Shown: in pieces, positions 1 to 18,016 of the stretch
How positions within the stretch are numbered: position 1 is the first letter of the stretch
Layout of the letters: every line of letters begins with the position of its first letter
Sequence record: PQ471516.1
Reading direction: 5' to 3' (one strand)
DNA length: 64,000 nucleotides
The notes under the pieces: generated by a model
The model's database searches: none
Told to the model about the DNA's origin: nothing
What the model saw: only the letters and a program-made list of their open reading frames with translations
Program-made: the position numbers and the translations under genes

Positions 1-39
1 GGACGGATATTTTTAAAAATTTTTTCAGTACTGAATTTT

Positions 40-86
40 GGGCGTAACTATGCACCCGGTGGGCTTGAGTCTTTCTCGACTTGATG
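40..86 (-). ncRNA. Candidate small RNA, CCC-ANN-GGGUGC family, copy A
   Basis: Minus-strand promoter TTGCTT(119-114)-N16-TATAAT(97-92), then AGUC-GAGAAA-GACU and GCCC-ACC-GGGUGC; no ORF follows. Confidence 0.55.
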
Positions 87-186
87 GAACTATTATACAG
101 TACTGAAAAAATAAAGCAATACCATAAACGCAAAAAGTTTTAATTAATTTGCTTGTTATCCTGGGGCGTATTGTGGTACTATAGTT

Positions 187-240
187 CAGTACTGAGAAAG
201 TGCGTTTACCTGCTAGGGTGCGGGAGTGTATCCTTTTTTT
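187..240 (+). ncRNA. Candidate small RNA, family copy B (variant) with terminator-like end
   Basis: TG-extended TACTAT 177-182; GUACU-GAGAA-AGUGC; GGGUGC-GGGAGU-GUAUCC followed by a T tract. Confidence 0.5.
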
Positions 241-254
241 ATATCTTGAATTTT

Positions 255-301
255 GGGCGTAATTCCGCACCCTCTGGGGTTTCCGCTTTCTCGCGTCTAT
301 G
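255..301 (-). ncRNA. Candidate small RNA, family copy C
   Basis: Minus promoter TTGACT(334-329)-N16-TATAAT(312-307); CGC-GAGAAA-GCG; CCC-AGA-GGGUGC. Confidence 0.55.
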
Positions 302-697
302 TAGTAATTATACGCTTTTTCAGGATCAAGTCAATACCTAAAAACAAAATAATTGAAAATAATTTAACGCGTTTAAACGGCCCGTAAAGCCCTGGAATGA
401 TTGGAATGGTGCAAATGTATAGCTTAGGTGTATTAATGCGTTAGAATGCGTCTGAGGCCGTTTTACGGGGTATAGGGATGATTTGGTGGATTGATTCAGT
501 ACTGAATGATAGTACTACTATATAGAAAGATAGTTCCCCTGGATGGTTGCAGTACTGAATGATAGTTCCCCTATATAGAGAGAAAACTATTTTAAAAGTA
601 CATGTAGAAAGTACTTGCAAACTAAGTTTAACGGCGTATAATGTTTTACATCGAGAGCGGGAACACTTCCCGCTACATATTACGAGAGATTAAAACG

Positions 698-1060
698 ATG
701 GCGACTCAAATCACTAAAATTATTGCTAACCTGGTTAACTTCCGCGACGAGATGAAAGATCTTCCGGCTGAAACGGTAAAAATTCACATCGCAGCTTATC
801 GGGAACTTATTGCAATGTTGCCGCTTAAGCGTGAACAATACGCCGCTACCGTGATGCTTGATGCGATGATCCATAAGATGATCGCCAGTGATTTGACGAT
901 GGTTTATCAGTACATGGGCGAAAAATTCTCGGTGTATAGTAAACCAGTACCAGGAATGGAAAGTACAGAAGTATTACACGGTTTAAATTTAAAACAAGAT
1001 GCATGGGATAATATGCCTCGTTTCCTGGTATGGGCTGACAGTGGCAAAATTTACGAATAA
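698..1060 (+). CDS. Hypothetical early protein
   Basis: ORF track 641..1060; start moved to ATG after promoter, hairpin and RBS. Confidence 0.8.
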   Translation: MATQITKIIANLVNFRDEMKDLPAETVKIHIAAYRELIAMLPLKREQYAATVMLDAMIHKMIASDLTMVYQYMGEKFSVYSKPVPGMESTEVLHGLNLKQDAWDNMPRFLVWADSGKIYE

Positions 1061-1154
1061 GTTTAATAAAGTACTTGCATACTAAGTTAAAACAAGTATA
1101 ATACTTTCTATCAGGTGGGGAATAGTTCCCCACTATAATTAAGAGATTAATTTT

Positions 1155-1388
1155 ATGAGTACTATTTTAACTGTTTCTCAATCCGTTGCACTGACTGACC
1201 TATTAAACGCTTTAAGCCGTTGCACTGAGGTTGGCTTGTTTGATGTGGTTGACGTTGCACCGGACGTTATTAATCATTTTTGTGATGCGATGGAAGAATG
1301 TAAGGAAGATGATAGCCGTATGATGGCGGTCGCCTTTGAGGAAGTACAGCCAGGTGAGATCAAAGGTTTACCAGTACTGAAAAAATAG
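1155..1388 (+). CDS. Hypothetical early protein
   Basis: ORF behind own promoter cassette. Confidence 0.8.
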   Translation: MSTILTVSQSVALTDLLNALSRCTEVGLFDVVDVAPDVINHFCDAMEECKEDDSRMMAVAFEEVQPGEIKGLPVLKK

Positions 1389-1470
1389 TACTTGCAAACT
1401 AAGTTTAAAAGCGTATAATACTTTACATCAGGTGGGGAATAGTTCCCCACTATATAAGAGGATTAAAAAA

Positions 1471-1710
1471 ATGGCTAAATCAAAAATGTTCTTAGGTCAC
1501 AAAAACAAAACTCATTGGAATGTAAGCCTTTGGATTAATAACGATGAGTCATTGTACCGGTTGGCCCAGGACTTTATTAACGATAGCACTAATCGCAATG
1601 ATGCGGCCCGTCATATGATGTTATTTTTAGAACAGACTGGACAAGATAAAACACCGGACGGATTCAAATATAGCACTACTGCGATCCGTGCTGCGATGGT
1701 TGGAATGTAA
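1471..1710 (+). CDS. Hypothetical early protein, paralogue of 3871..4110
   Basis: RBS GAGGA; shares GHKNKTHWNVSLWINN and TPDGFKYSTTAIRAAMVGM. Confidence 0.85.
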   Translation: MAKSKMFLGHKNKTHWNVSLWINNDESLYRLAQDFINDSTNRNDAARHMMLFLEQTGQDKTPDGFKYSTTAIRAAMVGM

Positions 1711-1795
1711 TAGAATTTATTTAAAGTACTATCATTTTTTGCGATAGTACTTTATAATAGTGTTTTATTCATACACCAACGATAAGGGTAACAGC

Positions 1796-2062
1796 ATGAA
1801 TATTAAGTATTTTGCGACGCGTGAACAAGCTCGGATCGCCGCACGCCAGGACGGGGCAACGTTTAAAGATATGGGAGCGGGATCGGCAAGTGGTAAACGT
1901 TGGGCCATTGTAAAGCGTAGTACCGCCAGATCATTACAGTACTGGCTATCTGCTTTAAAGCGTCCTGATAGTGTATCGCGTCGAGTGGTAGAAATAAAGC
2001 ACGACCGCAAGGGCAATCGCGTTACCGTGTACCGTACTAAAAAGATAGCAGTACTTGAATAA
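1796..2062 (+). CDS. Basic hypothetical protein, paralogue of 14694..15098
   Basis: Shares K(Y/F)FATREQARI and HDRKGNRVTVY. Confidence 0.8.
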   Translation: MNIKYFATREQARIAARQDGATFKDMGAGSASGKRWAIVKRSTARSLQYWLSALKRPDSVSRRVVEIKHDRKGNRVTVYRTKKIAVLE

Positions 2063-2149
2063 AAAGTACTTGCAAACTAAGTTTAAAAGCGTATAATGTT
2101 TTACATCGAGAGCGGGAATAGTTCCCGCCTATAACCAGGAGTAATAAAA

Positions 2150-2380
2150 ATGGCTAATATGTATATGACCGAAGTTAAAACCGTAAAAGATACTACCACT
2201 AATAAAACTACTTACTTACAGCGGATCTGTGGTGTATGGCAACGTATCAGCAAATCAAAGTACTTTAAATTAACATCATATGCAAACCGTTCGGATTCAT
2301 TCAGTACTGAAATAAAAGGTAATAAAGTACACCAATACGGCACTTATTATTATTACAGCCTGGACGCGATTGCAGTATAA
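2150..2380 (+). CDS. Hypothetical early protein
   Basis: Promoter cassette, RBS AGGAG. Confidence 0.8.
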   Translation: MANMYMTEVKTVKDTTTNKTTYLQRICGVWQRISKSKYFKLTSYANRSDSFSTEIKGNKVHQYGTYYYYSLDAIAV

Positions 2381-2445
2381 GCAGTTTACAAATCTTTACA
2401 ATTGCCGGTATTGACTTATTTTGTCAGTACTGGCATAATGTATTC

Positions 2446-2490
2446 ATTGGCAGATAAGCCGTAGCCCATAGGGTGCGGGAGTGTATCTAT
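2446..2490 (+). ncRNA. Candidate small RNA, family copy D
   Basis: TTGACT 2411-N17-CATAAT 2434; GGC-AGAUAA-GCC; GCCC-AUA-GGGUGC. Confidence 0.55.
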
Positions 2491-2510
2491 AGAAAAAGTA
2501 GTTTATTACA

Positions 2511-2548
2511 GTTACAATTGTGCACCCGGTGGGTTAGCTGTTGTCATG
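2511..2548 (-). ncRNA. Candidate small RNA, family copy E
   Basis: Minus promoter TTGACA(2583-2578)-N17-CATAAT(2560-2555); ACCC-ACC-GGGUGCACAAUUGUAAC. Confidence 0.55.
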
Positions 2549-2664
2549 GGGTATATTATGCCAGTACTTGATAATGCTGTCAATACTTTTTTTTACTATT
2601 CAGTACAGAAAACTATTTTTAAAAAGTACTTGCAAACTATGTTTAAAGGCGTATAATGTTTTAC

Positions 2665-2739
2665 ATCAGGACGGGGAACGAAATAAGTAACTTCCCGTTA
2701 AGTAGCCCAGGAGTAAGGCACACGAAAAACTCCCCTGAT
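2665..2739 (+). ncRNA. Candidate pseudoknotted RNA motif, copy 1
   Basis: Starts right after promoter 2630-2657; AUCAGG/CCUGAU, ACGGG/CCCGU, pseudoknot GCC/GGC plus GGAG/CUCC. Confidence 0.65.
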
Positions 2740-2806
2740 AAAATAGTTTGACAATTGTTTTTAAAAGCGTATAATACTTACATCGATACTGAATGAGGGT
2801 TACAAA

Positions 2807-3418
2807 ATGAAAACTATCACTACTACTACTTTTGTTATGGCTTTTTCTGAACTGACCGCAGAACAACAAGCGGCGGCTATCGAACTGGTTCGGGAACGTG
2901 AAAAAAACTTAAACGATGATTATTTTTCTGAAAGTGAAATTGAATACTATAAAGAAACAGTACTACCGGAATATGGCATAGATGAAGCTGAATTGCAATT
3001 CAGTGGTTTTTGGTCCCAGGGTGACGGTGCATCAATCAGTACTGACCACGTTGACGCAGTGAAGTTTTTACGCAAGATTAAAGCATTAACTAAGTATCGC
3101 TCGATCCGTCACCTGCTGAATGAAGATGATTTGGCGATGAGTGTAAAGCGTTCTCACTCCCACTACTCGCATGAGAATACTGTAAGCGGGTACATTGAAT
3201 CGGCTTACACTGATTTAACCGCAAAACAAGAAACGTTAGTTAATGAGCTTGAGGAACTACTCACTGAAACTATTCGTGAATTATCCCGCAAGTTGTACCG
3301 TGATTTAGAGAATGCATATGAGGATCAATTCACTACTGAAAACATTACGGCACTGATTGAGGGTAACGAATATCAATTCAATGTCATTGATGGTGTAGTA
3401 GAATCAATCGAATATTAA
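2807..3418 (+). CDS. Acidic hypothetical early protein
   Basis: 203-aa ORF, RBS GAGGG, promoter 2748-2775; FSGFWSQGDGAS segment. Confidence 0.85.
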   Translation: MKTITTTTFVMAFSELTAEQQAAAIELVREREKNLNDDYFSESEIEYYKETVLPEYGIDEAELQFSGFWSQGDGASISTDHVDAVKFLRKIKALTKYRSIRHLLNEDDLAMSVKRSHSHYSHENTVSGYIESAYTDLTAKQETLVNELEELLTETIRELSRKLYRDLENAYEDQFTTENITALIEGNEYQFNVIDGVVESIEY

Positions 3419-3511
3419 TTTAAAAAGTACTTGCAAACTAAGTTTAAAGGCGTATAATACTTTATATCGAGGCGGGGAATGGTTCCCCGCTCACACTAAA
3501 AGGGCAACAAA

Positions 3512-3778
3512 ATGAAAACTTTAAATATCACAACTGCACATCAATTGGTTCGGGATGCGATGGATCATGTGCAAGATTTCTTCCCTGATGTAAGTGTAGT
3601 GACTTATGAAAAAGGTACTTGGACTTATTCAACAATCAACGGTTATGAGCCTGATTTTGATGATCTGGAAGAAATGGAATTTAATTTTGATCTGCTGAAT
3701 GATGCCGCCCGTGAAGTGGAAAACGATGTTCAATACATTGATGGAGTAGTCGCACCTGATGCAGTAAAAGGATTATAA
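3512..3778 (+). CDS. Hypothetical early protein
   Basis: Promoter cassette. Confidence 0.8.
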   Translation: MKTLNITTAHQLVRDAMDHVQDFFPDVSVVTYEKGTWTYSTINGYEPDFDDLEEMEFNFDLLNDAAREVENDVQYIDGVVAPDAVKGL

Positions 3779-3870
3779 AATTTAAAAAGTACTTGCATTG
3801 TAGTTAGATTAACGTATAATACTTTATATCGAGGCGGGGAGTGGTTCCCCGCTCAAACGAGGATTAAAAA

Positions 3871-4110
3871 ATGGCTAGTACTAAAACTTACAACGGACAC
3901 AAAAACAAAACTCATTGGAATGTTTCCTTATGGATTAATAACGGTGAGTCATTGTATCGGCTTGCTCAAAGTTGCATTGCACAAAGTAAAACTAAAGATA
4001 TTGCTGCGGAATGTATGTACCGCAGATTAAAAGCCAACGGTACTACAACCACGCCAGACGGCTTTAAGTATAGCACTACTGCGATCCGTGCTGCGATGGT
4101 TGGAATGTAA
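3871..4110 (+). CDS. Hypothetical early protein, paralogue of 1471..1710
   Basis: Near-identical 3' end at DNA level. Confidence 0.85.
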   Translation: MASTKTYNGHKNKTHWNVSLWINNGESLYRLAQSCIAQSKTKDIAAECMYRRLKANGTTTTPDGFKYSTTAIRAAMVGM

Positions 4111-4168
4111 TATTCAGTACTGAATCAATGGCGGGGAATGGTTCCCGCCTTTATTGAGGGTTTATCTA

Positions 4169-4447
4169 ATGAGTAAAGTAATTAACTATACAGTACTAAG
4201 CAAGTCATTGTCTATAAGTGAGTGCACCAATGGTTTTTGGCTGTACGACGAAACGCGTGGCATGAATTTAGCTATGCAGGAGAAAACTGCTGATGCGGCA
4301 TATCTTAAAGCACTGGAATACTACCAGGAACGTTTGAAGGAAGTAGAAAACAATTATCAAAATTTAAAAGAGAAAGTAGATCATTTCGTCGGTCAATTCG
4401 TTGACGATGACGGGCACTACTGCGACCGTTGCGGATCTTACAGTTAA
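4169..4447 (+). CDS. Hypothetical protein with C-terminal CxxC
   Basis: RBS GAGGG; hairpin 4131-4149 upstream. Confidence 0.75.
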   Translation: MSKVINYTVLSKSLSISECTNGFWLYDETRGMNLAMQEKTADAAYLKALEYYQERLKEVENNYQNLKEKVDHFVGQFVDDDGHYCDRCGSYS

Positions 4448-4464
4448 GTACTGAGGATTATCTA

Positions 4465-4668
4465 ATGAGTGATTTAATTGAACGTATCAAAGAGCTTGAA
4501 GAAAAAGAATTGCAGTTGATCGGCTTACAGAATAAAATCTATCATGATTTGGGGAGTTTTATCAATGCCTGGGATAGTGGCGATCCTGATGCGTTACCTG
4601 CTAACCGCACGGCAATGATCAATGATGTGCGTGGTGTCTTTGATTATGTTTTAAAGCAATTAAATTAA
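4465..4668 (+). CDS. Hypothetical protein
   Basis: RBS GAGGA; start adjusted. Confidence 0.75.
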   Translation: MSDLIERIKELEEKELQLIGLQNKIYHDLGSFINAWDSGDPDALPANRTAMINDVRGVFDYVLKQLN

Positions 4669-4755
4669 AAAAAGTACTTGCAATTAGTTTTTAGTACTGT
4701 ATAATGGTTTACATCAAAGGGAGAAATGGTTCTCCCTGGTAATGAGGAAAATACA

Positions 4756-4977
4756 ATGGCTAATATCACTACTCTTTCCCAACTGGAAGCACTGGTTAAA
4801 TCTATGCGGGAACATGCCGACAAAATCGGCGTACAAGATCCAGCCGTTTGCTTTTGCGACGAATTGAATGATGATACCCTGGTAATAGCAGAAGTCCAGG
4901 ACGTTTCTAACTATTCCTCGCGTTACACTGGCGGCGTAGCAAATAAAGGTGACTTCTGTTTATACCTTACAAAATAA
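4756..4977 (+). CDS. Hypothetical early protein
   Basis: Promoter cassette, RBS GAGGA; start adjusted. Confidence 0.8.
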   Translation: MANITTLSQLEALVKSMREHADKIGVQDPAVCFCDELNDDTLVIAEVQDVSNYSSRYTGGVANKGDFCLYLTK

Positions 4978-4982
4978 CAACG

Positions 4983-5012
4983 CGGGGAGATAATAACTCC
5001 CCGTTACTTTTT
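4983..5012 (+). terminator. Intrinsic terminator
   Basis: CGGGGAG-N7-CTCCCCG plus T-rich tail after stop. Confidence 0.6.
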
Positions 5013-5032
5013 CAGTACTGAATCATTTAATA

Positions 5033-5077
5033 GACGGATCTCGGCACCCGGTGGGTTAGTGACTGTTTCGTCTTGAT
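5033..5077 (-). ncRNA. Candidate small RNA, family copy F
   Basis: Minus promoter TTGACA(5112-5107)-N17-CATAAT(5089-5084); GAC-GAAACA-GUC; ACCC-ACC-GGGUGC. Confidence 0.55.
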
Positions 5078-5220
5078 GTAGTAATTATGCCAGTACTGGA
5101 TGCACTTGTCAACAATTATTTTTCAAATACTTTTTATTAAAATACTTGCAATTAGTTTTTAAACGCGTATAATGTTTTGCATAGGGGGAGCGGTTCCCCT
5201 GGTAACTAAGGAATAAGAAA

Positions 5221-5457
5221 ATGGTCGAACAAATCAAATCAACGTCTTCGAATGTAACGGGAACGGTAGCACACTTTACTAGTGATGAATCGCGGGGCGT
5301 TCCCTATTGTGCTGTACATGTAAACACTGAGGGTAACTACTGGTTTACGGTTTACGGATCATATTCATTTGGACGGCCAGGGCATCAAAAAATTCTGGAT
5401 AAAGTACAGCCAACGGGTAAAAATATCACTGCTGAAATGTTTTATAAAAAATCATAA
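5221..5457 (+). CDS. Hypothetical early protein
   Basis: Promoter cassette, RBS AAGGA. Confidence 0.8.
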   Translation: MVEQIKSTSSNVTGTVAHFTSDESRGVPYCAVHVNTEGNYWFTVYGSYSFGRPGHQKILDKVQPTGKNITAEMFYKKS

Positions 5458-5542
5458 AGTACTTGCAATTAGTTTTCAGTACTGTATAATCTTTTACATC
5501 GACACGGGAAAACGGTTTCCCCTGGTAACTAAGGATAATCAA

Positions 5543-5842
5543 ATGAAAGTTGCAATCATCGCCCTGGCTTTATCTGTATCGTCTTTCGCTGTTAACGCTT
5601 CCGTTGATGTACCGCGTGAAAAATTCATTCAGTGCACTGTTGCAATGACTAACGAGGAAACGGCTGAGATCGTTACCAAATCCCTGGAACTGGCCCCTGC
5701 GATGTTTGCCAATGGCCCGTATCATGAAGAAGATGATCAGGGTAGCACGACCATCTATTACGATGCAAAAAGTAAACGCGGTTCAGTTACTGTAATGGAT
5801 ACTGAGAAAGTTACATTCACGGGAGTAATTAATTGTTTTTAA
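5543..5842 (+). CDS. Exported protein with signal peptide
   Basis: MKVAIIALALSVSSFAVNA fits a Sec signal peptide; RBS AAGGA; start adjusted from 5369. Confidence 0.7.
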   Translation: MKVAIIALALSVSSFAVNASVDVPREKFIQCTVAMTNEETAEIVTKSLELAPAMFANGPYHEEDDQGSTTIYYDAKSKRGSVTVMDTEKVTFTGVINCF

Positions 5843-5858
5843 TGAAGTACTGAATCAT

Positions 5859-5887
5859 AAGCCCACTATAAGAAGTGGGCTTTTTTT
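5859..5887 (+). terminator. Intrinsic terminator
   Basis: AAGCCCACT-N6-AGTGGGCTT plus T tract. Confidence 0.8.
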
Positions 5888-5964
5888 ATTGTAGTACTGA
5901 ATACTTTAAAAATAGTTTTGAAATAGTAGTTGACATTACCAGGGAAAGGCGTAGAATGTATTAC

Positions 5965-6027
5965 ATCAGGACGGGGAACACTAAGTAGACCGCCAGTAAG
6001 TCGAACGAAAAACTGGACACGACCTGG
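5965..6027 (+). ncRNA. Candidate pseudoknotted RNA motif, copy 2 (divergent)
   Basis: After promoter 5930-5957; UAAGUA GAC CG CCAG UAA GUC GAACGAAAAA CUGG. Confidence 0.6.
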
Positions 6028-6072
6028 AAACTTTGATAAACTAAATTACACTTTAATTGAGGAATTAAAAAA

Positions 6073-6552
6073 ATGGCAAATGTAAAATCATTCTTTAAAG
6101 CACTGGTATCTTCTGACGTATCTATCGCCGCTGAATTGCTGGCTGACCTGGATAATGATACCATGAAAGCAGTACGCAATAATTTTAATATGGCGTACAG
6201 TGCAGCAAAAGAACTGCAAGCCAAAAAGGTAGCAGAACTGGAAGCGGCAAAGGCAGAACGTGAAGCAGAACTGCAAGCAACAATCGAAAGCATCCAGGCG
6301 GCGGTAAGTGGATTGGATATCGAGATCGTAACCGATATGGCACATAAAGCCCTAGCTGCAAAATACGGTGAAGTAAAAGCGGTTAAAGAAAAGAAATGGA
6401 TTCAGGACCGCGTTAACGTAGTACTAGACAACGGGGAAGAATATCTTATTCCTGTACGCGGTAACTGCATTGCCGTAGTACTGGACGCGATTAACTCCAG
6501 TGGTATGACACGCGAGGAATGGATCGAAGCTCATCGCAAAGTTGAAGCATAA
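6073..6552 (+). CDS. H-NS-like protein (coiled coil plus H-NS-type C-terminal domain)
   Basis: Ala/Glu coiled coil; C-terminal NGEEYLIPVRGNCIAVVLDAINSSGMTREEWI aligns without gaps to E. coli H-NS [32 protein letters not shown] (from memory). Confidence 0.55.
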   Translation: MANVKSFFKALVSSDVSIAAELLADLDNDTMKAVRNNFNMAYSAAKELQAKKVAELEAAKAEREAELQATIESIQAAVSGLDIEIVTDMAHKALAAKYGEVKAVKEKKWIQDRVNVVLDNGEEYLIPVRGNCIAVVLDAINSSGMTREEWIEAHRKVEA

Positions 6553-6573
6553 CAATAAAAGTACTGAATCACT

Positions 6574-6600
6574 AGCCCACCTTAAACGGTGGGCTTTTTT
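6574..6600 (+). terminator. Intrinsic terminator
   Basis: AGCCCACC-N6-GGTGGGCT plus T tract. Confidence 0.8.
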
Positions 6601-6837
6601 GTGTTTATCGTTTACCAGGCCACCAGCACCGCCTAGAAACGATTCTAACGCATTAAACTGATTATCCGATGCATTGCCCTAGCTGGTGGCGTTAAGGCTG
6701 TAAGAACGCGATTGAGAGCGTTTAAAGTATTTTGCAAAAAGTAATAAAAAGTACTTGCACGATTAAGAGATTAGCGTATAATGTTTTACATCGAGAGGGG
6801 GAAACGGTTCTCCTTCCAAATCAAAGGAATCAAAACA

Positions 6838-7065
6838 ATGGCTATTATCATTACTCGCGTATCTGGTACTACTGGCAACGAACAAGTAGTTGCAGTCATT
6901 ACCAACAAGGAAGGTGCGGAATTGCAAAATGCAATGAATACCTGGGCCGTTAATGAGTTCGGTCAGTGGGCAAGTGTAGCATACATTGAAACCTATCAAG
7001 TGCCGTCGATTAGTTTAACTGATTTGGGCGTTGAGCGTATCCTTTGCCTTGATGAATTAAATTAA
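6838..7065 (+). CDS. Hypothetical early protein
   Basis: Promoter cassette; start adjusted. Confidence 0.8.
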   Translation: MAIIITRVSGTTGNEQVVAVITNKEGAELQNAMNTWAVNEFGQWASVAYIETYQVPSISLTDLGVERILCLDELN

Positions 7066-7151
7066 AAAAGTACTTGCAAAGTAAATCGAATAAAGTATAA
7101 TACATTACATCAAGGGGAGAAAATGGTTCTCCCCACTACAAGGAAACTAAA

Positions 7152-7295
7152 ATGAAAACTTGTCAATGTGGTCAGAAATCTATTACGGGTTTAAAGCGGG
7201 GCGTTGCTCTTTGCCAGTACCATTATAATTTACAAGTATGGGGTAAAGAATGGGCCGACCAGGTGGAAGCAATCAAGAAAGCAAAAAGTAAGTAA
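7152..7295 (+). CDS. Small Cys/His protein (47 aa)
   Basis: Own cassette, RBS AAGGA; CQCG...CQYH; below ORF-track cutoff. Confidence 0.7.
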   Translation: MKTCQCGQKSITGLKRGVALCQYHYNLQVWGKEWADQVEAIKKAKSK

Positions 7296-7374
7296 AAATA
7301 TTATCACAGTGCTATTGACATAGTTTGATAGTACTGGCATAATAGATTTTATCAAGACAACTGAGGAAAATAAA

Positions 7375-7587
7375 ATGGCTATCATTACTAAAATCAAAGT
7401 AAACAAATCACTGGTTAAGCTGGAAGAAGTGAAAGCAGGTTATAAAGTATCGTGGTGCGGTATGTATCGGATGTTCGCAGATATTGATGAAGCGATCAAT
7501 TATTACAGCGACACGGTTAAAAACTTTGTTCGTGCTGATGTGGTTATGGCAGTGGTAACGCACAAAGCAGCGAAAGAAAGTAAGTAA
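7375..7587 (+). CDS. Hypothetical early protein
   Basis: Promoter, RBS GAGGA. Confidence 0.8.
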   Translation: MAIITKIKVNKSLVKLEEVKAGYKVSWCGMYRMFADIDEAINYYSDTVKNFVRADVVMAVVTHKAAKESK

Positions 7588-7676
7588 AAATATTATCACA
7601 GTACTATTGACATAGTTTGATAGTACTGGCATAATAGATTTTATCAAGACAACATATTAATTTAAGGAATACAAAA

Positions 7677-8000
7677 ATGGCTAAAACTATCATTAACACC
7701 GTTTCCCTGGCTGCAATCCGTGCAATCAATGTTGACGGTAAACGTTGGACTGATTCATATGGCAATACTTATCATTCTTGTCATGTAAGCGTTGAACTGG
7801 ATAACGGTTTGAATGATCTGGCGGTTGAATCATTTACTTATGGCTATGAAGATGCATATCAACAAACGGCGTTAGATCTCTTAAAGGAATCAGTAGACGG
7901 GCTTAATACTGATGAAACCTCCCTTACTCGTTTGTGCAATGATCTTAATATCCCGTTGCATTGTACTGTACAGAATGTTAAACGCAAAAAAGATCTTTAA
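7677..8000 (+). CDS. Hypothetical protein, paralogue of 14280..14603
   Basis: Shares RWTDS(Y/H)GNTYHSC and FTYGY. Confidence 0.85.
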   Translation: MAKTIINTVSLAAIRAINVDGKRWTDSYGNTYHSCHVSVELDNGLNDLAVESFTYGYEDAYQQTALDLLKESVDGLNTDETSLTRLCNDLNIPLHCTVQNVKRKKDL

Positions 8001-8080
8001 TTAGCTTTACTTTATGCAGATACTTTGATATAGTGTCTGCATAGGGGAAAGAAATTAAATTAACTTAAGAGGATCGTATA

Positions 8081-8350
8081 ATGAAAAATATCAGTACTTT
8101 AATCGATGCAGGTACACATGTTCGGCGGTCAATGGTTGCAACCAGTACTACAAAACAAGTAGCGAGCGGTTATCTTGTATTTGTGCACGATGGTAAACTC
8201 CTGGAACGTTCAATCAATTTTGATGTTAAAAACAATTGCCGTTTTATTATCTTTAAGCGTGAGCAATATAAAATTGATTTACCAGCAAAGCCCATTAGTG
8301 GGGCGTACAACGTGCAATCATTGTTTGAACGTCAACCATACACCTATTAA
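8081..8350 (+). CDS. Hypothetical protein
   Basis: RBS GAGGA. Confidence 0.7.
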   Translation: MKNISTLIDAGTHVRRSMVATSTTKQVASGYLVFVHDGKLLERSINFDVKNNCRFIIFKREQYKIDLPAKPISGAYNVQSLFERQPYTY

Positions 8351-8401
8351 TCAAAACATCGTTAGCGGTCGATTTAGGCCGCTTATATTGGGGATTATAC
8401 C

Positions 8402-8674
8402 ATGAACGTTAATCAAGTACTGAATGAGATCGAAAGCATCATTAAACCGATGAAGCGTACTGATGCTATGTTAACACCGGAAGAATGCCGCCTTTATGAG
8501 CGTTACAGCGTCGAACAAGTCCAGGCGATGGCTATGGCTACCCCAGCCGTTAAACCGCCTGAGAATGCGTTACAGGACGTTACAGGGGATTATATCATCA
8601 ATCCAGTACTAGGGAAGATGGCTGCAATCACCGAAGATCAACAAGACTACTTAAGCCAGTACTTAAAAGGTTAA
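8402..8674 (+). CDS. Hypothetical protein
   Basis: ORF track, operon context. Confidence 0.7.
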   Translation: MNVNQVLNEIESIIKPMKRTDAMLTPEECRLYERYSVEQVQAMAMATPAVKPPENALQDVTGDYIINPVLGKMAAITEDQQDYLSQYLKG

Positions 8675-8679
8675 TTAAT

Positions 8680-8889
8680 ATGCTTACTGTACAGGATAAG
8701 ATCGACATCTTAAAGGTTAATATGTATGTGATTGATGCAGTACCTGGTAAAGTATTTGCATACGATGACACCACTGTAAGCGATTTCTACTATAGCCAGG
8801 ACGTGGGGGATCTTTCTGTACAGTCGGTTATTGAAAACGTAGTTAATGCAGCGTATGAGCATTTACTTTCAAATAGTACTTGCAATTAG
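8680..8889 (+). CDS. Hypothetical protein
   Basis: ORF track, follows previous gene. Confidence 0.7.
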   Translation: MLTVQDKIDILKVNMYVIDAVPGKVFAYDDTTVSDFYYSQDVGDLSVQSVIENVVNAAYEHLLSNSTCN

Positions 8890-9185
8890 TTTTTAAACGC
8901 GTATAATGTTTTACATGAAGGGGAGAAATGATTCTCCCCACTAATTAAGGAATATGAAATGAAAGCATCAAAAAAGAGTAATACTAAGAAAGCACGTTCA
9001 CCTTTCGCTGGGGTATTCCCTTTACGTTTCGTTGATGAAGTAGTTTCCTACCCGCCGGGCCTTACTCCTGAGATGGTAGAAAGTTTGCGTAAATCTAAAA
9101 AATAGTACTTGCAATTAGTTTTTAAACGCGTATAATGTTTTACATGAAGGGGAGAAATGGTTCTCCCAATAACAGGAGAATCAAA

Positions 9186-9338
9186 ATGAAACAATACAAC
9201 GCTCGGTTTGATGTTACTATCGGTAACGGCAAAGGTCAATTCTCTTTCAGTACTCGCAAAAGTTATACAGAAAACTTCCTGCGTAATTGTGCACTGACCG
9301 CCGCACAAATTAAACATTATTTTCAGGCTAAAAAATGA
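9186..9338 (+). CDS. Small hypothetical protein
   Basis: Promoter cassette, RBS AGGAG; start adjusted. Confidence 0.7.
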   Translation: MKQYNARFDVTIGNGKGQFSFSTRKSYTENFLRNCALTAAQIKHYFQAKK

Positions 9339-9573
9339 AAACATTAGCTTACTATAGTTCGGCCCTGGTCGGTGCATTGATCGCGGCGTTGTTAGTAACC
9401 TATCTATTCTTTATGGTGATTTAAATGAATCCAACAGGTTTAAACTATAAAAGTTGTTCGGCGTTTACGAAAGCAAATAAAGCGAATGCACGTAAAGCGA
9501 AAGTACAGGAATACATCAAGCAAGGCATGACGCGAAAGGCGGCGATTCTAAAAGCTAAAAATAAATGAAAAAA

Positions 9574-9606
9574 GTGGTTGACTCCGGTCAGCCATTTTGC
9601 TATTAT
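9574..9606 (+). promoter_or_regulatory. Palindromic terminator-like element overlapping the promoter of sRNA copy G (also 13315-13349, 16619-16654, 18881-18916)
   Basis: NGG(A/T)TTGAC-TC(C/A)G-GTCAG..CCN then TTT(T)GC-TATTAT; TTGACT-N17-TATTAT with TG extension. Confidence 0.7.
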
Positions 9607-9611
9607 ATATT

Positions 9612-9660
9612 CATTGAGAGATAGCTCACTAGCCCACAGGGTGCATAAGTGTATCTATTA
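9612..9660 (+). ncRNA. Candidate small RNA, family copy G
   Basis: UGAG-AGAUAG-CUCA; GCCC-ACA-GGGUGCAUAAGUGUAUCU; no ORF. Confidence 0.6.
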
Positions 9661-9778
9661 TATAATGTTTGAGTACTGAAAACTATTTTTAAAAAGTACT
9701 TGCAAACTATCTCAATAAGCGTATAATGTTTTACATCGAAAGGGGAAACGGTTTCCCCTGGTAATAAGGAAACAAATC

Positions 9779-10120
9779 ATGACTATCTCAATTGCTCAAT
9801 CTAACTTTGAAAATGAAATCATCGCCCAGGCACTGCGTTTAAATGATGGTCGGGCCGAAATTAATTACGGTTTCAATTCAGGCGGTTGCGAAAACTATCA
9901 GTACTTTGTAACGGCTGATGGCGGTGTCCTGGGTATCAATACAGTTATTGTAAACATCCAAAAAATTAATTTCAATGATCCAGACGATAGCCAGTTTTAC
10001 ATCACTGGCGTAGACGTGAACTATGAGGATGACTCACTAACTGATGATCACACTGGCGAGCGGTTAGAAAGTGCATACGGTGAAGATGATTATCAGTCCG
10101 GTCCAGAAGATTTCGAATAA
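9779..10120 (+). CDS. Acidic hypothetical early protein
   Basis: Promoter cassette, RBS AAGGA. Confidence 0.8.
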   Translation: MTISIAQSNFENEIIAQALRLNDGRAEINYGFNSGGCENYQYFVTADGGVLGINTVIVNIQKINFNDPDDSQFYITGVDVNYEDDSLTDDHTGERLESAYGEDDYQSGPEDFE

Positions 10121-10216
10121 TATAAAAAAATAGTTTGACAATAGATTATAGTACTGTATAATAGTTTACATCAAGGGGAGAAAAACTTCTCCCCACTAAC
10201 AGAGAGAGAAAACAAA

Positions 10217-10429
10217 ATGGCTAATATCCGGTCGAAATTAAAAAATGCAAAACAAGTTTTATTTTCAGATCATGAATACTTTAATAAAGATATTACAGGA
10301 GTTACAAGTATCAAGGAAGTAAAAGAAAAAACCGGCGTTTTGTGTGATGTGCGATTAGTTGGGACATTTGGGAATAACGTGCTATATCGCTGCGGTGATT
10401 ACAATTTTACACTGACTATCATTAACTAA
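10217..10429 (+). CDS. Hypothetical early protein
   Basis: Promoter cassette. Confidence 0.75.
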   Translation: MANIRSKLKNAKQVLFSDHEYFNKDITGVTSIKEVKEKTGVLCDVRLVGTFGNNVLYRCGDYNFTLTIIN

Positions 10430-10512
10430 AAATATTATCACAGTACTATTGACATAGTTTGATAGTACTGACATAATAACTTTTATCAACTACACTACTA
10501 AGGAATTAAAAA

Positions 10513-10692
10513 ATGGCTATCATCGCAAAAACTGAAATCGTTGGTCTGGATTCTATCATCATGACGTTTGAAGATCAAAAAGGTATGTATGTAGTTTCCT
10601 ATGGTGATTATGTTCGGGAGTATGAAACGGTAGACGAAGCCTTTGAAAGTTATATTCGCCAGGTGAATAAAGCATACGACGACTACCGCTAA
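10513..10692 (+). CDS. Small hypothetical protein (59 aa)
   Basis: Promoter 10449, RBS AAGGA; below track cutoff. Confidence 0.7.
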   Translation: MAIIAKTEIVGLDSIIMTFEDQKGMYVVSYGDYVREYETVDEAFESYIRQVNKAYDDYR

Positions 10693-10791
10693 AATATATT
10701 ACCAGTACTATTAAATCTATTGACAACGTTTGATAGTACTGTATAATAAGTTTTATAAACAGTAGTTAACTTAACCTAAGAGAGAAACAAA

Positions 10792-10935
10792 ATGATCGCA
10801 CTGGATTCATTCATCGACGCAGTACTGGCAAAAACTGGCGAGGATCTGACCGCAGAACAATACGCGATGATCGAGCAATGTCAGCAAAACGGTAAATCGG
10901 TGAAAGATACTGTTAAGATTATCCGCAAGATGTAA
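10792..10935 (+). CDS. Small hypothetical protein (47 aa)
   Basis: Promoter 10720; terminator-like hairpin 10942-10968 follows. Confidence 0.7.
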   Translation: MIALDSFIDAVLAKTGEDLTAEQYAMIEQCQQNGKSVKDTVKIIRKM

Positions 10936-11040
10936 TATTATAGCCCACTGGTTAACGCTGGTGGGCTTTAATCATTTACCCTATACAATGCCAGTACTCA
11001 ACCGTTTATCTCGTTAGAATGCGTTACAGGACGTTTAACA

Positions 11041-11238
11041 ATGATTAGCATGAAATCAGTACAAAAACAAATAGAAACATTATCAAAAATTAAACGTAAA
11101 CAGTACTCGTTAGAATATACAATCAATGGTAACTATCATCTAATGAAAGAAAATAATTTTATAGTCATTGATGAATCATTGCAAATTATTAGTATAGTAC
11201 TGAAAGCATTAATTAATGATAGAAAAAAATTAAAATAA
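11041..11238 (+). CDS. Hypothetical protein
   Basis: ORF track; AT-rich, weak RBS. Confidence 0.45.
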   Translation: MISMKSVQKQIETLSKIKRKQYSLEYTINGNYHLMKENNFIVIDESLQIISIVLKALINDRKKLK

Positions 11239-11276
11239 TTGTTGACATACAATGCCAGTACTGGCATAATACTTAC

Positions 11277-11325
11277 ATCAAGACGAGAACGTCACTAACC
11301 CATAGGGTGCACAAATGTAACTATA
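11277..11325 (+). ncRNA. Candidate small RNA, family copy H
   Basis: TTGACA 11242-N17-CATAAT 11265; GACG-AGAA-CGUC; ACCC-AUA-GGGUGCACAAAUGUAAC. Confidence 0.6.
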
Positions 11326-11566
11326 TAACATCGATCAATAAATGATCAAAAAAGTACTGGATCAATTTAGCATAAGGAGTATAATTCTGATCAATTCTTG
11401 TTCAAAGGCAATATACGCAGTTGAATTTATATAGACAGTACAAAGGCGTTACTATCCGTGGTAATGCTGGTGGATATGTAGTATCATATGGTTTGAATAA
11501 GATTAGCACTAGTAGTATTATTGTAGCATTACAGTACTATAGTATTTTTATAATGAGGTTAAAATA

Positions 11567-11824
11567 ATGGCTGTAGGATTTGCGAAGGACGGGGCCGAAC
11601 AAGACGAGATTAACGCAGTGATTCAGGCCGCTGTAAACCACGCTAGAAAGCAAATTAACGCACAAAGAGAATCACTGGTACATTGCCTCGACTGCGGCGA
11701 TAAAATCCCTGAGAATCGACGCCAGGCCGTTATAGGGTGCATGTATTGTATTACTTGCCAGGAGGATCATGATAGTACTTTTAAACGTCAACCGCGTAAT
11801 TGTTGGCATAGATCTATGAGATAA
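11567..11824 (+). CDS. DksA/TraR C4-type zinc finger protein (YbiI-like)
   Basis: CLDCGDKIPENRRQAVIGCMYCITCQ; N-terminus resembles YbiI. Confidence 0.9.
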   Translation: MAVGFAKDGAEQDEINAVIQAAVNHARKQINAQRESLVHCLDCGDKIPENRRQAVIGCMYCITCQEDHDSTFKRQPRNCWHRSMR

Positions 11825-11887
11825 AAAGTATTGACAGTACTGTTAGATAATGTATAATAGTTTACATCTTATCTGAGGATTGAAATC

Positions 11888-12244
11888 ATGGGTATACAAC
11901 ATATCACGCGTACTACTGACAACGGCGAGATCACTGGTTATCAAGTACAGGGCAAAGTAGCACAATTGCAGTACTGGTTTGTTAAACGTGGAATCATTGC
12001 ACCGGATCTTGATTATGACCGTGTAGCGTTTATTGATTCTCTTTATGTTGATCCTGATAGTCGGGGCAATGGTGAAGGTAACGAATTAATGAATGCCTTT
12101 ATCGATGCCGCCGATGATTCAGATTGTATCATCTTAGAATGCGATACGGGAGAAGATAACGCCTTCAATCTTAAAGAATGGTACGAAGGTTTCGGATTCG
12201 AGGTACTGATCGATAGTGAATATCCTATCATGATTTTATCATAG
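11888..12244 (+). CDS. GNAT-family acetyltransferase
   Basis: IDSLYVDPDSRGNGEGNELM acetyl-CoA motif A. Confidence 0.85.
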   Translation: MGIQHITRTTDNGEITGYQVQGKVAQLQYWFVKRGIIAPDLDYDRVAFIDSLYVDPDSRGNGEGNELMNAFIDAADDSDCIILECDTGEDNAFNLKEWYEGFGFEVLIDSEYPIMILS

Positions 12245-12322
12245 TACTTGCATTTAGTTTTCAGTACTGTTATAGTACTTACATCAAGGGGAAACATCTT
12301 CCCCTACTAAGAGGAAATAAAA

Positions 12323-12511
12323 ATGGAAAACTTATCAAGTATTTTAGTACAAGATGATTTCGGTAATCCTGGAAGTGCTATCATTGTTCGGGGCAATAAA
12401 GCAACGTTTGTTATTGCTGGTGGACCCGTACAGCGTAGCATTAAAAATAATGCTGTTACCATTAATAATGTACGCTATCGCTTAGATAAAGAATTAATTC
12501 ATAAACTGTAA
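12323..12511 (+). CDS. Hypothetical early protein
   Basis: Promoter cassette, RBS GAGGA. Confidence 0.8.
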   Translation: MENLSSILVQDDFGNPGSAIIVRGNKATFVIAGGPVQRSIKNNAVTINNVRYRLDKELIHKL

Positions 12512-12596
12512 AAAAGTACTGGACAATAGATTATAGTACTGTATAATAGTTTACATGAAGGGGAGAAATGATTCTCCCCACTAAGAGGAAAGAAAA

Positions 12597-12809
12597 ATGC
12601 AAGGTCAACTAATCGTTCGTAAATGGTCTGATACTAACGAAAAACCGTGGGATGTACAATACATCGCCCCCAATGGTGAATCCAGATATCAACCAGGTGT
12701 AACGCATAGTACTGAGCAATTCGCCGCCGCTCATCGTGAACGTCTGTTACAATCAATGCAGTTCGGTTCCGGTGAAAAATTCATTCAGGATCATTGGCTG
12801 AAAGATTAA
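12597..12809 (+). CDS. Hypothetical early protein
   Basis: Promoter cassette, RBS GAGGA. Confidence 0.8.
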   Translation: MQGQLIVRKWSDTNEKPWDVQYIAPNGESRYQPGVTHSTEQFAAAHRERLLQSMQFGSGEKFIQDHWLKD

Positions 12810-13354
12810 AAAGTACTTGCAATTAGTTTTCAGTACTGTATAATGTTTTACATGAAGGGGAGAATAGTTCTCCCCACTACTAGGAAACAGCATTATGCAC
12901 ATGAATCCGTTTATAGTAGTAATTGCAATCATGATGGCTGTACAGGCCGTGTTAGAATACTTAAGCAAAGCAGGAGTTATCTAAATGATCCAGGTAGAAT
13001 TATCAGTACTCAAAGATCTGTTTTATCGGTTAGGCACTACTGGAGAATACCCGAAAGGTGATACCGCTAAACTATACACTGCATTGGATGTATGGCAACG
13101 TAACGAACTGGCTAACGCCTGGCGTAAAGGTAAATCAGAGGGGATTGCAGCATGAAAGAATTCTTATTCGAAGTAGTGTTTAACCGCGTAGGTGGAAACC
13201 AATTAATTCGCTCAAGTGGTCACAATGTTAATCAAGCGTGGACTAACTTAAAACGAATGTACCCGGACGCGATTACATATCGTAACCCGAAAGAAGTTTA
13301 AAAAGAATTGAAAAAAAGGATTGACTCAGGTCAGTCCTTTTGCTATTATATATG

Positions 13355-13400
13355 CATTGAAACAATCTAGCCCACAGGGTGCATAAATGTATCTATTATA
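13355..13400 (+). ncRNA. Candidate small RNA, family copy I
   Basis: TTGACT 13321-N17-TATTAT 13344; AUUG-AAA-CAAU; GCCC-ACA-GGGUGCAUAAAUGUAUCU. Confidence 0.6.
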
Positions 13401-13484
13401 TGCTGGTGGCTAGTACTATCAAGTACTGAAAACTATTTTTAAAAAGTACTTGCAAAGTATCACGATAAGCGTATAATGTTTTAC

Positions 13485-13557
13485 ATCAGGACGGGGAACG
13501 AAACAAGTAACCCCGTTAAGTAGTCCAGGAGTAAGACATACGAAAACCTCCCCTGAT
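13485..13557 (+). ncRNA. Candidate pseudoknotted RNA motif, copy 3
   Basis: After promoter 13450-13477; AUCAGG/CCUGAU, ACGGGG/CCCCGU, GUC/GAC plus GGAG/CUCC. Confidence 0.65.
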
Positions 13558-13645
13558 AAAATAGTTTGACAATAGTTTTTAGTACTGTATAATATTTTAC
13601 ATCAAGTGGGGAATAGTTCCCCACCTAACAAAGAGAGAAATTAAA

Positions 13646-13921
13646 ATGCGGATTCTACTTACAGCTAACGAAATCGAGCAAGTACTGACTACTAATCTGG
13701 AACAATGGAAACGTGATGCAGATATCCAGGCGGTACAATGGCTTAACGATAAGTTAACGCCGGATGACTTAAGCAAGATTGTAGATCCTCAATTCTACGA
13801 AGATATTCACGACACCGCGTTAAGCGTCGAGGATGTACTTGATAAGCACTTTATTGATACAGATTTACAGGTTTACGGTCGTAAAAACTTTATCACTATT
13901 CACGACATTTACAATACTTAA
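13646..13921 (+). CDS. Hypothetical early protein
   Basis: Promoter cassette. Confidence 0.8.
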   Translation: MRILLTANEIEQVLTTNLEQWKRDADIQAVQWLNDKLTPDDLSKIVDPQFYEDIHDTALSVEDVLDKHFIDTDLQVYGRKNFITIHDIYNT

Positions 13922-14009
13922 GTATTGACAAAGTATCTTAGTACTGTATAATAGTTTACATCAAGTGAGGGGAAACGGTTCCCCTCCTAACAAAGAGAGA
14001 GAAATAAAA

Positions 14010-14192
14010 ATGGCTAAGTGCACTATCTGCAAGAAAGAAATAGTATTAGTTCCAAGTGCCCGTGAACGTGCCGCTCGGTTTGGTGGCAAAGCGTCAGACT
14101 ATACAAAAATGTTTACTGCCCATACAGCTTGCCAGGTAGCAAAACGTTCACAAGAAAGCGTAGAATTAATGCGTAAACTTTCCAAAAAATAA
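14010..14192 (+). CDS. Small putative Zn-binding protein
   Basis: CTIC...HTAC; promoter cassette; start adjusted. Confidence 0.75.
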   Translation: MAKCTICKKEIVLVPSARERAARFGGKASDYTKMFTAHTACQVAKRSQESVELMRKLSKK

Positions 14193-14279
14193 GTATTGAC
14201 AAAGTATCTTAGTACTGTATAATAGTTTACATCAAGCGAGGGGAATGGTTCCCCTCCTAACAAAGAGAGAGAAATAAAA

Positions 14280-14603
14280 ATGGCTATGATCCTTACCCAG
14301 AAAGTAGAACTGAAAATTGTAACCTCCTTTGACATTAAAGTTAATCGGTGGACTGATAGCCACGGCAATACTTACCACTCCTGCTACGTGTCCGCATTGA
14401 TTGGTGATCGCTGGGAAGACCTGGGACACGAAACCTTTACATACGGTTACGGCACACAAGGCGAGTACACGGGTTTAGAAATCATTAAGGAAACTGTAAT
14501 AGGTTTCAACCCGAAAGAGAAAGTACTACACAGAATTGAGAAAGAGATCAACAAAGAAATTACAGTTCGCTACTACGATGTAAAACGTAAGAAAGACATG
14601 TAA
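14280..14603 (+). CDS. Hypothetical protein, paralogue of 7677..8000
   Basis: Shared motifs; cassette nearly identical to the one before 14010. Confidence 0.85.
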   Translation: MAMILTQKVELKIVTSFDIKVNRWTDSHGNTYHSCYVSALIGDRWEDLGHETFTYGYGTQGEYTGLEIIKETVIGFNPKEKVLHRIEKEINKEITVRYYDVKRKKDM

Positions 14604-14693
14604 TAGAATCCATTTAAAGTACTATTTGACATTGCCCAGATAGTACTTTATAATAGACTCTAACTTGTAGTACTAATTAACTTAACTAATAGG

Positions 14694-15098
14694 ATGTACA
14701 CCATGATTACTAAATTCTTCGCTACCCGTGAACAAGCTCGCATCGTTGCCCGTGAGGAAGGTGAAACATTTAAAGACATGGGTAAAGATTCTCCTACTGG
14801 TAAACGCTGGGCGGTACAGTTCAAAGAGATCTCTGATATTGTGAATTCACCTGAGCCTGTACTTACAGCAGCAGAACTAAAGCAAGCTCAAGAACTGGCT
14901 GAAGTACTGAACGCTCAAGATGACTTCTTGAAAGGTTCTGATATTGAAGTTACAGTTAACGCAAATGCATGGACTCACGCGGATCACCTGGCAAACCTGA
15001 AGCGTCCAAGTGAACTGGTTCGCAACCAGAAAGAGATCCGTCATGACCGTAAAGGAAACCGTGTAACAGTATACAGTAAACGCCGCCAGGTTATCTAA
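14694..15098 (+). CDS. Hypothetical protein, paralogue of 1796..2062 with acidic insert
   Basis: Shared N- and C-terminal motifs. Confidence 0.85.
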   Translation: MYTMITKFFATREQARIVAREEGETFKDMGKDSPTGKRWAVQFKEISDIVNSPEPVLTAAELKQAQELAEVLNAQDDFLKGSDIEVTVNANAWTHADHLANLKRPSELVRNQKEIRHDRKGNRVTVYSKRRQVI

Positions 15099-15122
15099 TA
15101 ACTTTGCAGTACTAACCAACAC

Positions 15123-15149
15123 GGCGGGATATCAGTTCCCGCCTTTTTT
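15123..15149 (+). terminator. Intrinsic terminator
   Basis: GGCGGGA-N7-TCCCGCC plus T tract. Confidence 0.7.
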
Positions 15150-15163
15150 ATGGGAGAAACAAA

Positions 15164-15418
15164 ATGATTAAGGTTCAACTATCAAACGATAATGTATTAC
15201 GGGTACACTATAAAGCTCCACAAAGAATCATCACAAAGGCCGTACAGCTTGCTAATGAGTTTATTAATGGTAGTCTATTACCCAGGAAGTTAAGCAACGG
15301 GAAACTACGCGTTATCGATGTAGACACTAACAATAGAATAGTAATTGAGAGTACAGGAAAGATAAACCTTTATGAACACCAACAATATAACAAGAAAATA
15401 AAACTAATATCACGTTGA
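15164..15418 (+). CDS. Possible ParE-like (RelE/ParE fold) protein
   Basis: KA..L...F..G...RKL....VIDV...RIV......LYEHQQYN resembles the ParE-like toxin family pattern (from memory). Confidence 0.45.
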   Translation: MIKVQLSNDNVLRVHYKAPQRIITKAVQLANEFINGSLLPRKLSNGKLRVIDVDTNNRIVIESTGKINLYEHQQYNKKIKLISR

Positions 15419-15471
15419 CAGTACTCAATTGTTTTAGTACTATGTACATATACCAACACGGGAGAAACAAA

Positions 15472-15690: not shown

Positions 15691-15748
15691 TTGACAGTAC
15701 TCAAATGTTTTAGTACTATGTACATATACCAACACGGGGGAAAACAAA

Positions 15749-15991: not shown

Positions 15992-16022
15992 GATAGTTTC
16001 ATTAACTCAAGGAGATAACACA

Positions 16023-16607: not shown

Positions 16608-16659
16608 AAAAGATTAAAAAAGGGATTGACTCCGGTCAGTCCCTTTGCTATTATATATT

Positions 16660-17949: not shown

Positions 17950-18016
17950 TAACTAAAACAAAGTATAATGTTTTGCATAGGGGGAGATATCCTCCCCCAC
18001 TAAAAGGAGTAATAAA

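Follow-up and report, generated by a model that had tools for sequence, protein, structure and literature searches.

A predicted RNA pseudoknot in early transcripts of Escherichia jumbo phage Turkey5 is shared with phage T7 and matches no catalogued RNA family

Several kinds of compact RNA resemble, in one respect or another, the repeated element described here. The put RNAs of phage HK022 (putL and putR) are protein-independent antiterminators that are transcribed by host RNA polymerase from the first nucleotides of an early transcript override intrinsic terminators, bind the beta' zinc-binding domain and suppress termination and pausing; putL is about 70 nt long, consists of two stem-loops with characteristic bulges, starts at +3, contains a minor-groove triplex, needs no protein, and uses a downstream -10-like pause element, for which a role as a sigma-dependent pause has been proposed (PMC9378689). 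The type III antitoxin RNAs (ToxI, CptI, TenpI) are H-type pseudoknots with a conserved A-stretch that makes A-minor contacts with stem 1 and with a covarying stem 2, and tenpIN occurs in E. coli and Klebsiella (PMC12283969). A phage-encoded mimic of ToxI has been described in the literature. Minimal pseudoknot aptamers such as preQ1-I combine a short stem, a short first loop, conserved junction residues and an A-rich 3' loop, and small self-cleaving ribozymes with double pseudoknots (twister, HDV-like) are compact multi-helix folds with invariant junctions that occur frequently in phages and with permuted helix connectivity.

We analyzed the first 64,000 nucleotides (hereafter the window) of the genome of Escherichia phage Turkey5 (Asteriusvirus; PQ471516.1). 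Positions 2400-3400 are 96-98% identical to PBECO4, 121Q, G17 and other Asteriusvirus jumbo phages of about 350 kb. In the related phage vB_Ec-M-J the homologous region lies inside an annotated 21.5-kb direct terminal repeat, and Klebsiella jumbo phage fENko-Kae01 shows the same arrangement; the copies lie in the roughly 20-kb terminal repeats of related jumbo phages. Window 1-19,000 is a run of small + strand genes, almost each with its own strong sigma-70 promoter (about 40 in total, TTGCAA or TTGACA-16-TATAAT). An initial annotation, made from the sequence alone, had proposed that three of these transcripts begin with copies of an RNA pseudoknot with compensatory changes in both stems. That observation is confirmed: all three copies read exactly as it gave them. 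The relevant features are as follows.

2630-2657 (+), sigma-70 promoter P1 of copy 1 (TTGCAA-16-TATAAT); its -10 hexamer ends 7 nt before the element
2665-2739 (+), copy 1, whole element: helix P1 5' strand 2665-2670; hairpin P2 2671-2698; UAAGUA 2699-2704; S1 2705-2707 with 2717-2719; L1 2708-2709; S2 2710-2713 with 2730-2733; UAA 2714-2716; A-rich L3 2720-2729; P1 3' strand 2734-2739
2748-2775 (+), second promoter (TTGACA-16-TATAAT, 12/12 consensus), 14 nt after copy 1, driving gene 2807-3418
5859-5882, terminator just upstream of the copy 2 promoter
5930-5957 (+), promoter of copy 2 (TTGACA-16-TAGAAT)
5965-6037 (+), copy 2 ("type 2", without the P2 hairpin): 5' strand 5965-5981; UAAGUA 5982-5987; S1 5988-5990 with 6000-6002; S2 5993-5996 with 6013-6016; L3 6003-6012; 3' tail 6017-6037, pairing back to the 5' end (CAGGACG/CGACCUG and AUCAGG/UUUGAU)
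6073-6552, gene directly following copy 2, with no second promoter
13450-13477 (+), promoter P1 of copy 3 (TTGCAA-16-TATAAT)
13485-13557 (+), copy 3, whole element: helix P1 13485-13490 with 13552-13557; hairpin P2 13491-13516; UAAGUA 13517-13522; S1 13523-13525 with 13535-13537; S2 13528-13531 with 13548-13551; L3 13538-13547
13566-13593 (+), second promoter (12/12 consensus), 14 nt after copy 3, driving gene 13646-13921

Each copy begins at the predicted +1 of a strong sigma-70 promoter, 7-8 nt after the -10 hexamer, and comprises UAAGUA, stem S1 (3 bp, GNC/GN'C), a 2-nt loop, stem S2 (4 bp), UAA, and an A-rich 10-nt loop. A pattern made only of the fixed loops, TAAGTAGNNCNNNNNTAAGNNNNACGAAAA, matched three times on the + strand of the window (2699, 5982 and 13517), against 0.06 matches expected, and the 5' head ACATCAGGACGGGGAAC also matched three times, against 0.04 expected. 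A covariance model of the core, run without filters over both strands of the window, found only these three copies (copy 1, 48 bits, E 1.7e-17; copy 2, 56.9 bits, E 3e-21; copy 3, 50.7 bits, E 1.2e-18), and the next best hit had an E value of 0.13. The segment lengths 2/3/10 are invariant in the window, as the initial annotation stated, although among T7-like relatives the UAA linker is 3 or 4 nt. In copies 1 and 3 the first six nucleotides (AUCAGG) pair with the last six (CCUGAU), and minimum-free-energy folding recovered P1, P2 and S2, with S1 as the pseudoknotted partner. Copy 2 lacks the 3' half of P2, is closed by a longer two-part pairing, and runs to 6037 rather than to 6027 as first annotated.

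The element is not confined to this phage, and the description of it as a three-copy repeat understates a family of hundreds of members. A blastn search with copy 1 found it in 45 records, which besides Asteriusvirus include Justusliebigvirus phages (muut, outra, EmilieFrey and others) at 88-91% identity, together with the gene that follows copy 3. Searches with copy 2 and with a variant from phage EJP2 reached T7-like phages, Salmonella/Klebsiella jumbo phages (Munch, fENko-Kae01), Erwinia jumbo phage Hallingskeid and the Vequintavirinae phage UPEC06. The gene behind the type 2 pseudoknot belongs to phrog_27871/phrog_20181 (unknown function) in Turkey5 (6073-6552), Munch and Hallingskeid (L014 3758-4345 and L015 3170-3796, the corresponding loci), indicating that promoter, pseudoknot and gene form a conserved module among these jumbo phages. 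In T7 (NC_001604) the element lies in the leader of promoter A1 (nt 536-593, beginning at +39, where the annotated +1 is nt 498), and the core is nt 551-586, or +54 to +89, ending 2 nt before the -35 hexamer of A2. A 63-nt T7 query found one copy in each of 490 phage records (about 490 Autographiviridae records), including T7, T3, phiYeO3-12, Kayfunavirus, Drulisvirus, Cronosvirus and others. Copy number varies from 2 to 4 among Asteriusvirus genomes. IMG/VR contains few members. Copies in Escherichia phage CMSTMSU (MH494197.1; 9351, 11906 and 20011) carry small indels that break the stems, but that record is flagged UNVERIFIED and its gene calls are fragmentary, so these are probably sequencing errors rather than decayed copies, and we set it aside.

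To ask whether the pairing is selected, we scanned metagenome and species-genome collections with a pattern that fixes only loop residues and leaves the variable stem positions free. Of 58 hits, 30 had a Watson-Crick S1 middle pair and 4 of 4 S2 pairs, the other 28 had at most 1 of 4, and none lay between. The 30 paired hits sit on T7-like contigs (about 40 kb), jumbo-phage contigs, or short fragments that carry the same flanking leader; the only one from the species-genome collection (185,579 genomes) is a 2.7-kb fragment that looks like T7-like phage. Across 21 distinct cores the S1 middle pair appears as A-U, U-A, C-G and G-C, and S2 appears as GGAG, CCAG, GGUG, CCUG and CUUG, each with its complement; 100% of cells were paired and 4 of 7 pairs carried double changes, whereas slid-register controls paired only 16-36% of cells. 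Because this alignment was assembled from hits that had been filtered for pairing, its 100% figure is circular, and the unfiltered count of 30 and 28 is the fair test. The constant loops are not absolute: the model also recovered a metagenomic Asteriusvirus-like copy (contig L038, 8611-8645, - strand) with UGAGUA in place of UAAGUA, the only departure seen in that hexamer. A reading of the region as a small ORF was rejected, because UAA/UAG triplets lie in the fixed loops and the substitution pattern is that of base pairs.

A further helix stacks on the 3' end of S2. In T7-like copies the loop of the hairpin just 5' of UAAGUA is complementary to the 5-6 nt that follow S2 after a 2-nt linker, and the two change in step: GUCAA/UUGAC, GUCGGU/ACCGAC, GUCAUC/GAUGAC, GUCAGA/UCUGAC, GAUUAG/CUAAUC, GCUAA/UUAGC, GUGAA/UUCAC and UCAAC/GUUGA. 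RNAalifold predicted this helix (P3) unprompted, which would make the T7-like element a double pseudoknot of about 60 nt. On 22 sequences all five P3 pairs showed compensatory changes and none was broken, and over the four helices 97% of cells paired, against 81% in shuffles and 16-34% when the register was slid. In the jumbo and large phages the same 3' tail pairs instead with the 5' end of the transcript to form P1 (AUCAGG/CCUGAU in Turkey5, GACGG/CCGUC in UPEC06, CGGCG/UGCCG in Munch), but P1 rests on fewer independent changes and is less certain.

These results bear on whether the conserved signal could reside in the DNA, as an UP element or a protein site for the downstream promoter, or reflect a recently duplicated promoter region. 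In T7 the A-tract lies at -50 to -38 of promoter A2, and the 3' strand of P3 is the A2 -35 hexamer itself. In several T7-like phages, however, the P3 partner is not a promoter hexamer, so the RNA pairing is the conserved feature; the spacing to the next promoter varies from 2 to 46 nt, copy 2 has no such promoter, and conservation across unrelated families excludes recent duplication. The compensatory changes in four helices point to RNA pairing and effectively refute a DNA-level role, which we regard as very unlikely.

We next asked whether the element belongs to a catalogued class. None of the 4227 models of Rfam 15, which include riboswitch and ribozyme families, matched it: there was no hit at the gathering score in the whole window, no hit at E<=10 on 2640-2800, no hit overlapping the element on 5900-6100, and none on the T7, T3, Pkp-1 or outra loci beyond chance microRNA matches. 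ARAGORN found no tRNA or tmRNA gene in the window. The T7-like early leaders carry a boxA-like GCUCUUUAACAA (GCTCTTTAACAA) 150-270 nt downstream of the pseudoknot (T7, locus L010, 813-824; other T7-like loci, L011 794-805, L012 856-867, L079 285-296 and others), but the window has no above-chance match, indicating that the element is not part of a boxA system. Blastn searches of 5,426 E. coli genomes and 72,556 plasmids with jumbo-type and T3-type elements gave no match or chance matches only. Literature searches, including searches with literal sequence strings, returned template listings but no description of the RNA, although they did not extend to older T7 papers in subscription journals. 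At the level of RNA families the element is therefore new as far as these searches can tell; because its mechanism is unproven, we class it with structured phage leader RNAs that act without a phage protein.

The family is always encoded within about 100 nt after a strong host-type early promoter, in the genome end that carries the early genes, and the distance from the upstream -10 hexamer to UAAGUA clusters at 24, 35-41 and 49-62 nt by lineage. Of 51 distinct contexts, 41 have a strong promoter within 110 nt downstream, against 3% at random positions, and no terminator follows the element. T7 carries it only after A1, the most upstream major promoter. The loops are constant across phages of Escherichia, Klebsiella, Yersinia, Cronobacter and Aeromonas, which suggests a conserved host partner or a universal ligand, and the downstream genes are unrelated: Ocr in T7, a SAM hydrolase in Kayfunavirus, and proteins of unknown function in Turkey5. 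The initial annotation held that copies 1 and 3 are not needed as leaders, because a second promoter follows each. This is an inference, and the strict promoter-proximal position in about 50 contexts suggests to us that the place in the transcript matters.

The interpretation offered in the initial annotation, that the element is a pseudoknot of a kind typical of small ribozymes, ligand-binding aptamers or protein decoys such as ToxI and is of no class it could match, is partly supported. Our analysis establishes that the three units belong to a previously uncatalogued family of structured RNAs, that the pseudoknot is a real, selected RNA structure, that both interleaved stems covary while the single-stranded UAAGUA, UAA and NNNNGAAANN stay fixed across unrelated phage families (S1 of 3 bp, S2 of 4-5 bp), and that they are placed close behind early promoters. 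Any function, whether polymerase binding, decoy activity, self-cleavage or ligand binding, is inferred from sequence and position alone, and the evidence does not choose among these activities.

Our tentative preference is for a nascent-RNA element that folds as it leaves the host RNA polymerase and binds that same polymerase or its elongation partners. This would give a 1:1 modified elongation complex that is less prone to backtracking, pausing or Rho, and would favor transcription started at the most upstream early promoter, which in T7 is that of the polymerase thought to draw the genome into the cell. The consensus promoter that usually follows could also serve as a sigma-dependent pause that gives the RNA time to fold and dock, as proposed for putL. 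This view would account for the promoter-proximal place, the lack of a terminator, the constant loops, the portability between phage families and the stoichiometry, because in our reasoning only a cis-acting RNA is automatically stoichiometric with its target. The principle resembles that of put: both RNAs are phage encoded, about 70 nt long, made from an early host-polymerase promoter without a partner phage protein gene, and present in more than one copy per genome, and here an A-rich strand faces a short stem and a promoter follows. The element is not a put homologue, however. Its predicted fold is a hairpin plus a pseudoknot rather than two stem-loops, it contains no -10-like hexamer, and no sequence likeness was apparent, judged without direct alignment to a put sequence. 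Early transcripts made on whole T7 DNA still stop at the early terminator TE and still pause, so a full put-type antiterminator is unlikely and at most an anti-backtracking or anti-Rho effect remains. In addition, only 3 of about 40 early promoters in the window carry the element, and in copies 1 and 3 the second promoter would make element-free mRNA for the same gene.

The element is also dispensable in the laboratory. A deposited T7 mutant clone (T7_1t3, OL964750.1) lacks 104 bp (T7 nt ~541-644) between two GTCAACCGG direct repeats, which removes the pseudoknot together with promoter A2; the second repeat shows that the A2 leader re-uses the loop-plus-stem sequence of the A1 hairpin. Dispensability is compatible with a trans-acting decoy, in which the element is itself the product, a stable small RNA that binds and neutralizes a host protein such as a type III toxin-like endoribonuclease or another low-abundance defense or RNA-decay protein. 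The layout of H-type pseudoknot and A-stretch is that of type III antitoxins (PMC12283969), the host range overlaps with that of tenpIN, a closing helix seals the jumbo-phage copies from +1 as expected of a discrete and protected RNA, the element has its own very strong promoter while the gene behind it has a second one, copy number varies, and the unit has moved between unrelated phage families. We nevertheless consider a decoy unlikely. The copies are single units 3.3 and 7.5 kb apart rather than tandem repeats, the A-run lies inside the knot and not at unit borders, no terminator defines a 3' end, and no toxin gene was found nearby, in that the downstream proteins match only PHROGs of unknown function and no Pfam family reaches its threshold. 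The Rfam scans, which include whatever antitoxin-RNA families release 15 holds, gave no hit over the element, nothing similar was found in 5,426 E. coli genomes, 72,556 plasmids or, apart from the T7-like fragment, 185,579 species genomes, and near-universal presence in enterobacterial T7-like phages with invariant loops fits a core host target better than a sporadic defense system.

A new class of small self-cleaving ribozyme that trims the 5' leader is doubtful but, like the aptamer or sponge and stabilizer readings considered below, cannot be excluded by computation. The fold is compact and multi-helix, junction nucleotides stay constant while the stems vary freely, the element is independent of gene context and occurs in several copies per genome, and the helix that stacks on S2 is connected in two different ways in different lineages, a kind of permutation that is common among small ribozymes. 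The standard laboratory T7A1 template ends at about +46 (T7 nt 498-543), inside the P2 loop and just before the pseudoknot, and the standard T7A2 fragment carries the pseudoknot only as untranscribed upstream DNA (PMC7430646), so routine in vitro work would not have revealed cleavage. Conversely, no Rfam ribozyme family matched at E<=10, no candidate cleavage site can be named, and a cleaved A1 leader is not known to have been reported from classical transcription of whole T7 DNA.

We give similarly little weight to a ligand-binding aptamer, acting either as a riboswitch without a recognizable expression platform or as a sponge for a small molecule. The topology and sizes resemble those of the smallest aptamers such as preQ1-I, and loops that stay constant across many host genera fit a universal small ligand. 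However, no riboswitch model matched (at E<=10 for copy 1), no terminator or Shine-Dalgarno sequence is coupled to the fold, the downstream genes are unrelated and show no link to queuosine, extra helices (P1/P3 and P2) are present, and the constant 5' tail UAAGUA is unusual for small aptamers.

If the element is a new functional class of natural RNA, conserved from phage T7 to 350-kb jumbo phages, it could be an RNA-only regulator of the host transcription machinery unrelated to put, or equally a new self-cleaving ribozyme or a new aptamer or sponge class. We judge this reading to be possible but somewhat less likely than not; in this view the RNA has sat unnoticed in the T7 A1 leader because the usual A1 template is cut just before it. 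T7 is among the best-studied of all viruses and its A1 promoter is a standard tool, so a four-helix RNA with invariant loops that lies 40 nt into the A1 transcript and is shared with jumbo phages and other unrelated coliphages would be a new piece of early phage biology. The family is small (35-75 nt), rich in natural variants, and tied to the first seconds of infection, when host polymerase, host defenses and genome entry meet. It deserves an Rfam family, so that hundreds of phage genomes stop carrying it unannotated or covered by spurious small ORFs.

Finally, we compared the element with the other early leaders of the window. Most of these begin ACAUC(A/G)AG followed by an 8-bp 5' hairpin (GGGGAGAA-nnnn-UUCUCCCC) placed before the Shine-Dalgarno sequence (for example at 1420-1450, 3459-3490, 7102-7135, 10163-10195, 13594-13625 and 17083-17115, + strand), and P2 of copies 1 and 3 looks like this generic hairpin with an enlarged loop. 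This resemblance, and the pairing of the very first nucleotides of the transcript by P1 in copies 1 and 3, could suggest a passive 5' stabilizer or barrier to RNase E. Such a role seems improbable, because a barrier would not need a pseudoknot or loops conserved from jumbo phages to T7, about 35 neighboring leaders manage with a simple hairpin, the pseudoknot in T7 starts only at +39, and the predicted folding energy is unremarkable (z -0.5 to -1.8). A second repeated unit, consisting of a 12-bp terminator-like hairpin (AAAGGGATTGACTCCGGTCAGTCCCTTT), then GCTATTATAT, then a conserved AGCCCAYAGGGTGCATAAGTGTATC block, is present at ~2395-2480 (variant), 9571-9660, 11242-11300 (variant), 13314-13400, 16619-16710 and 18884-18960, and it lies 100-200 nt upstream of pseudoknot copies 1 and 3.
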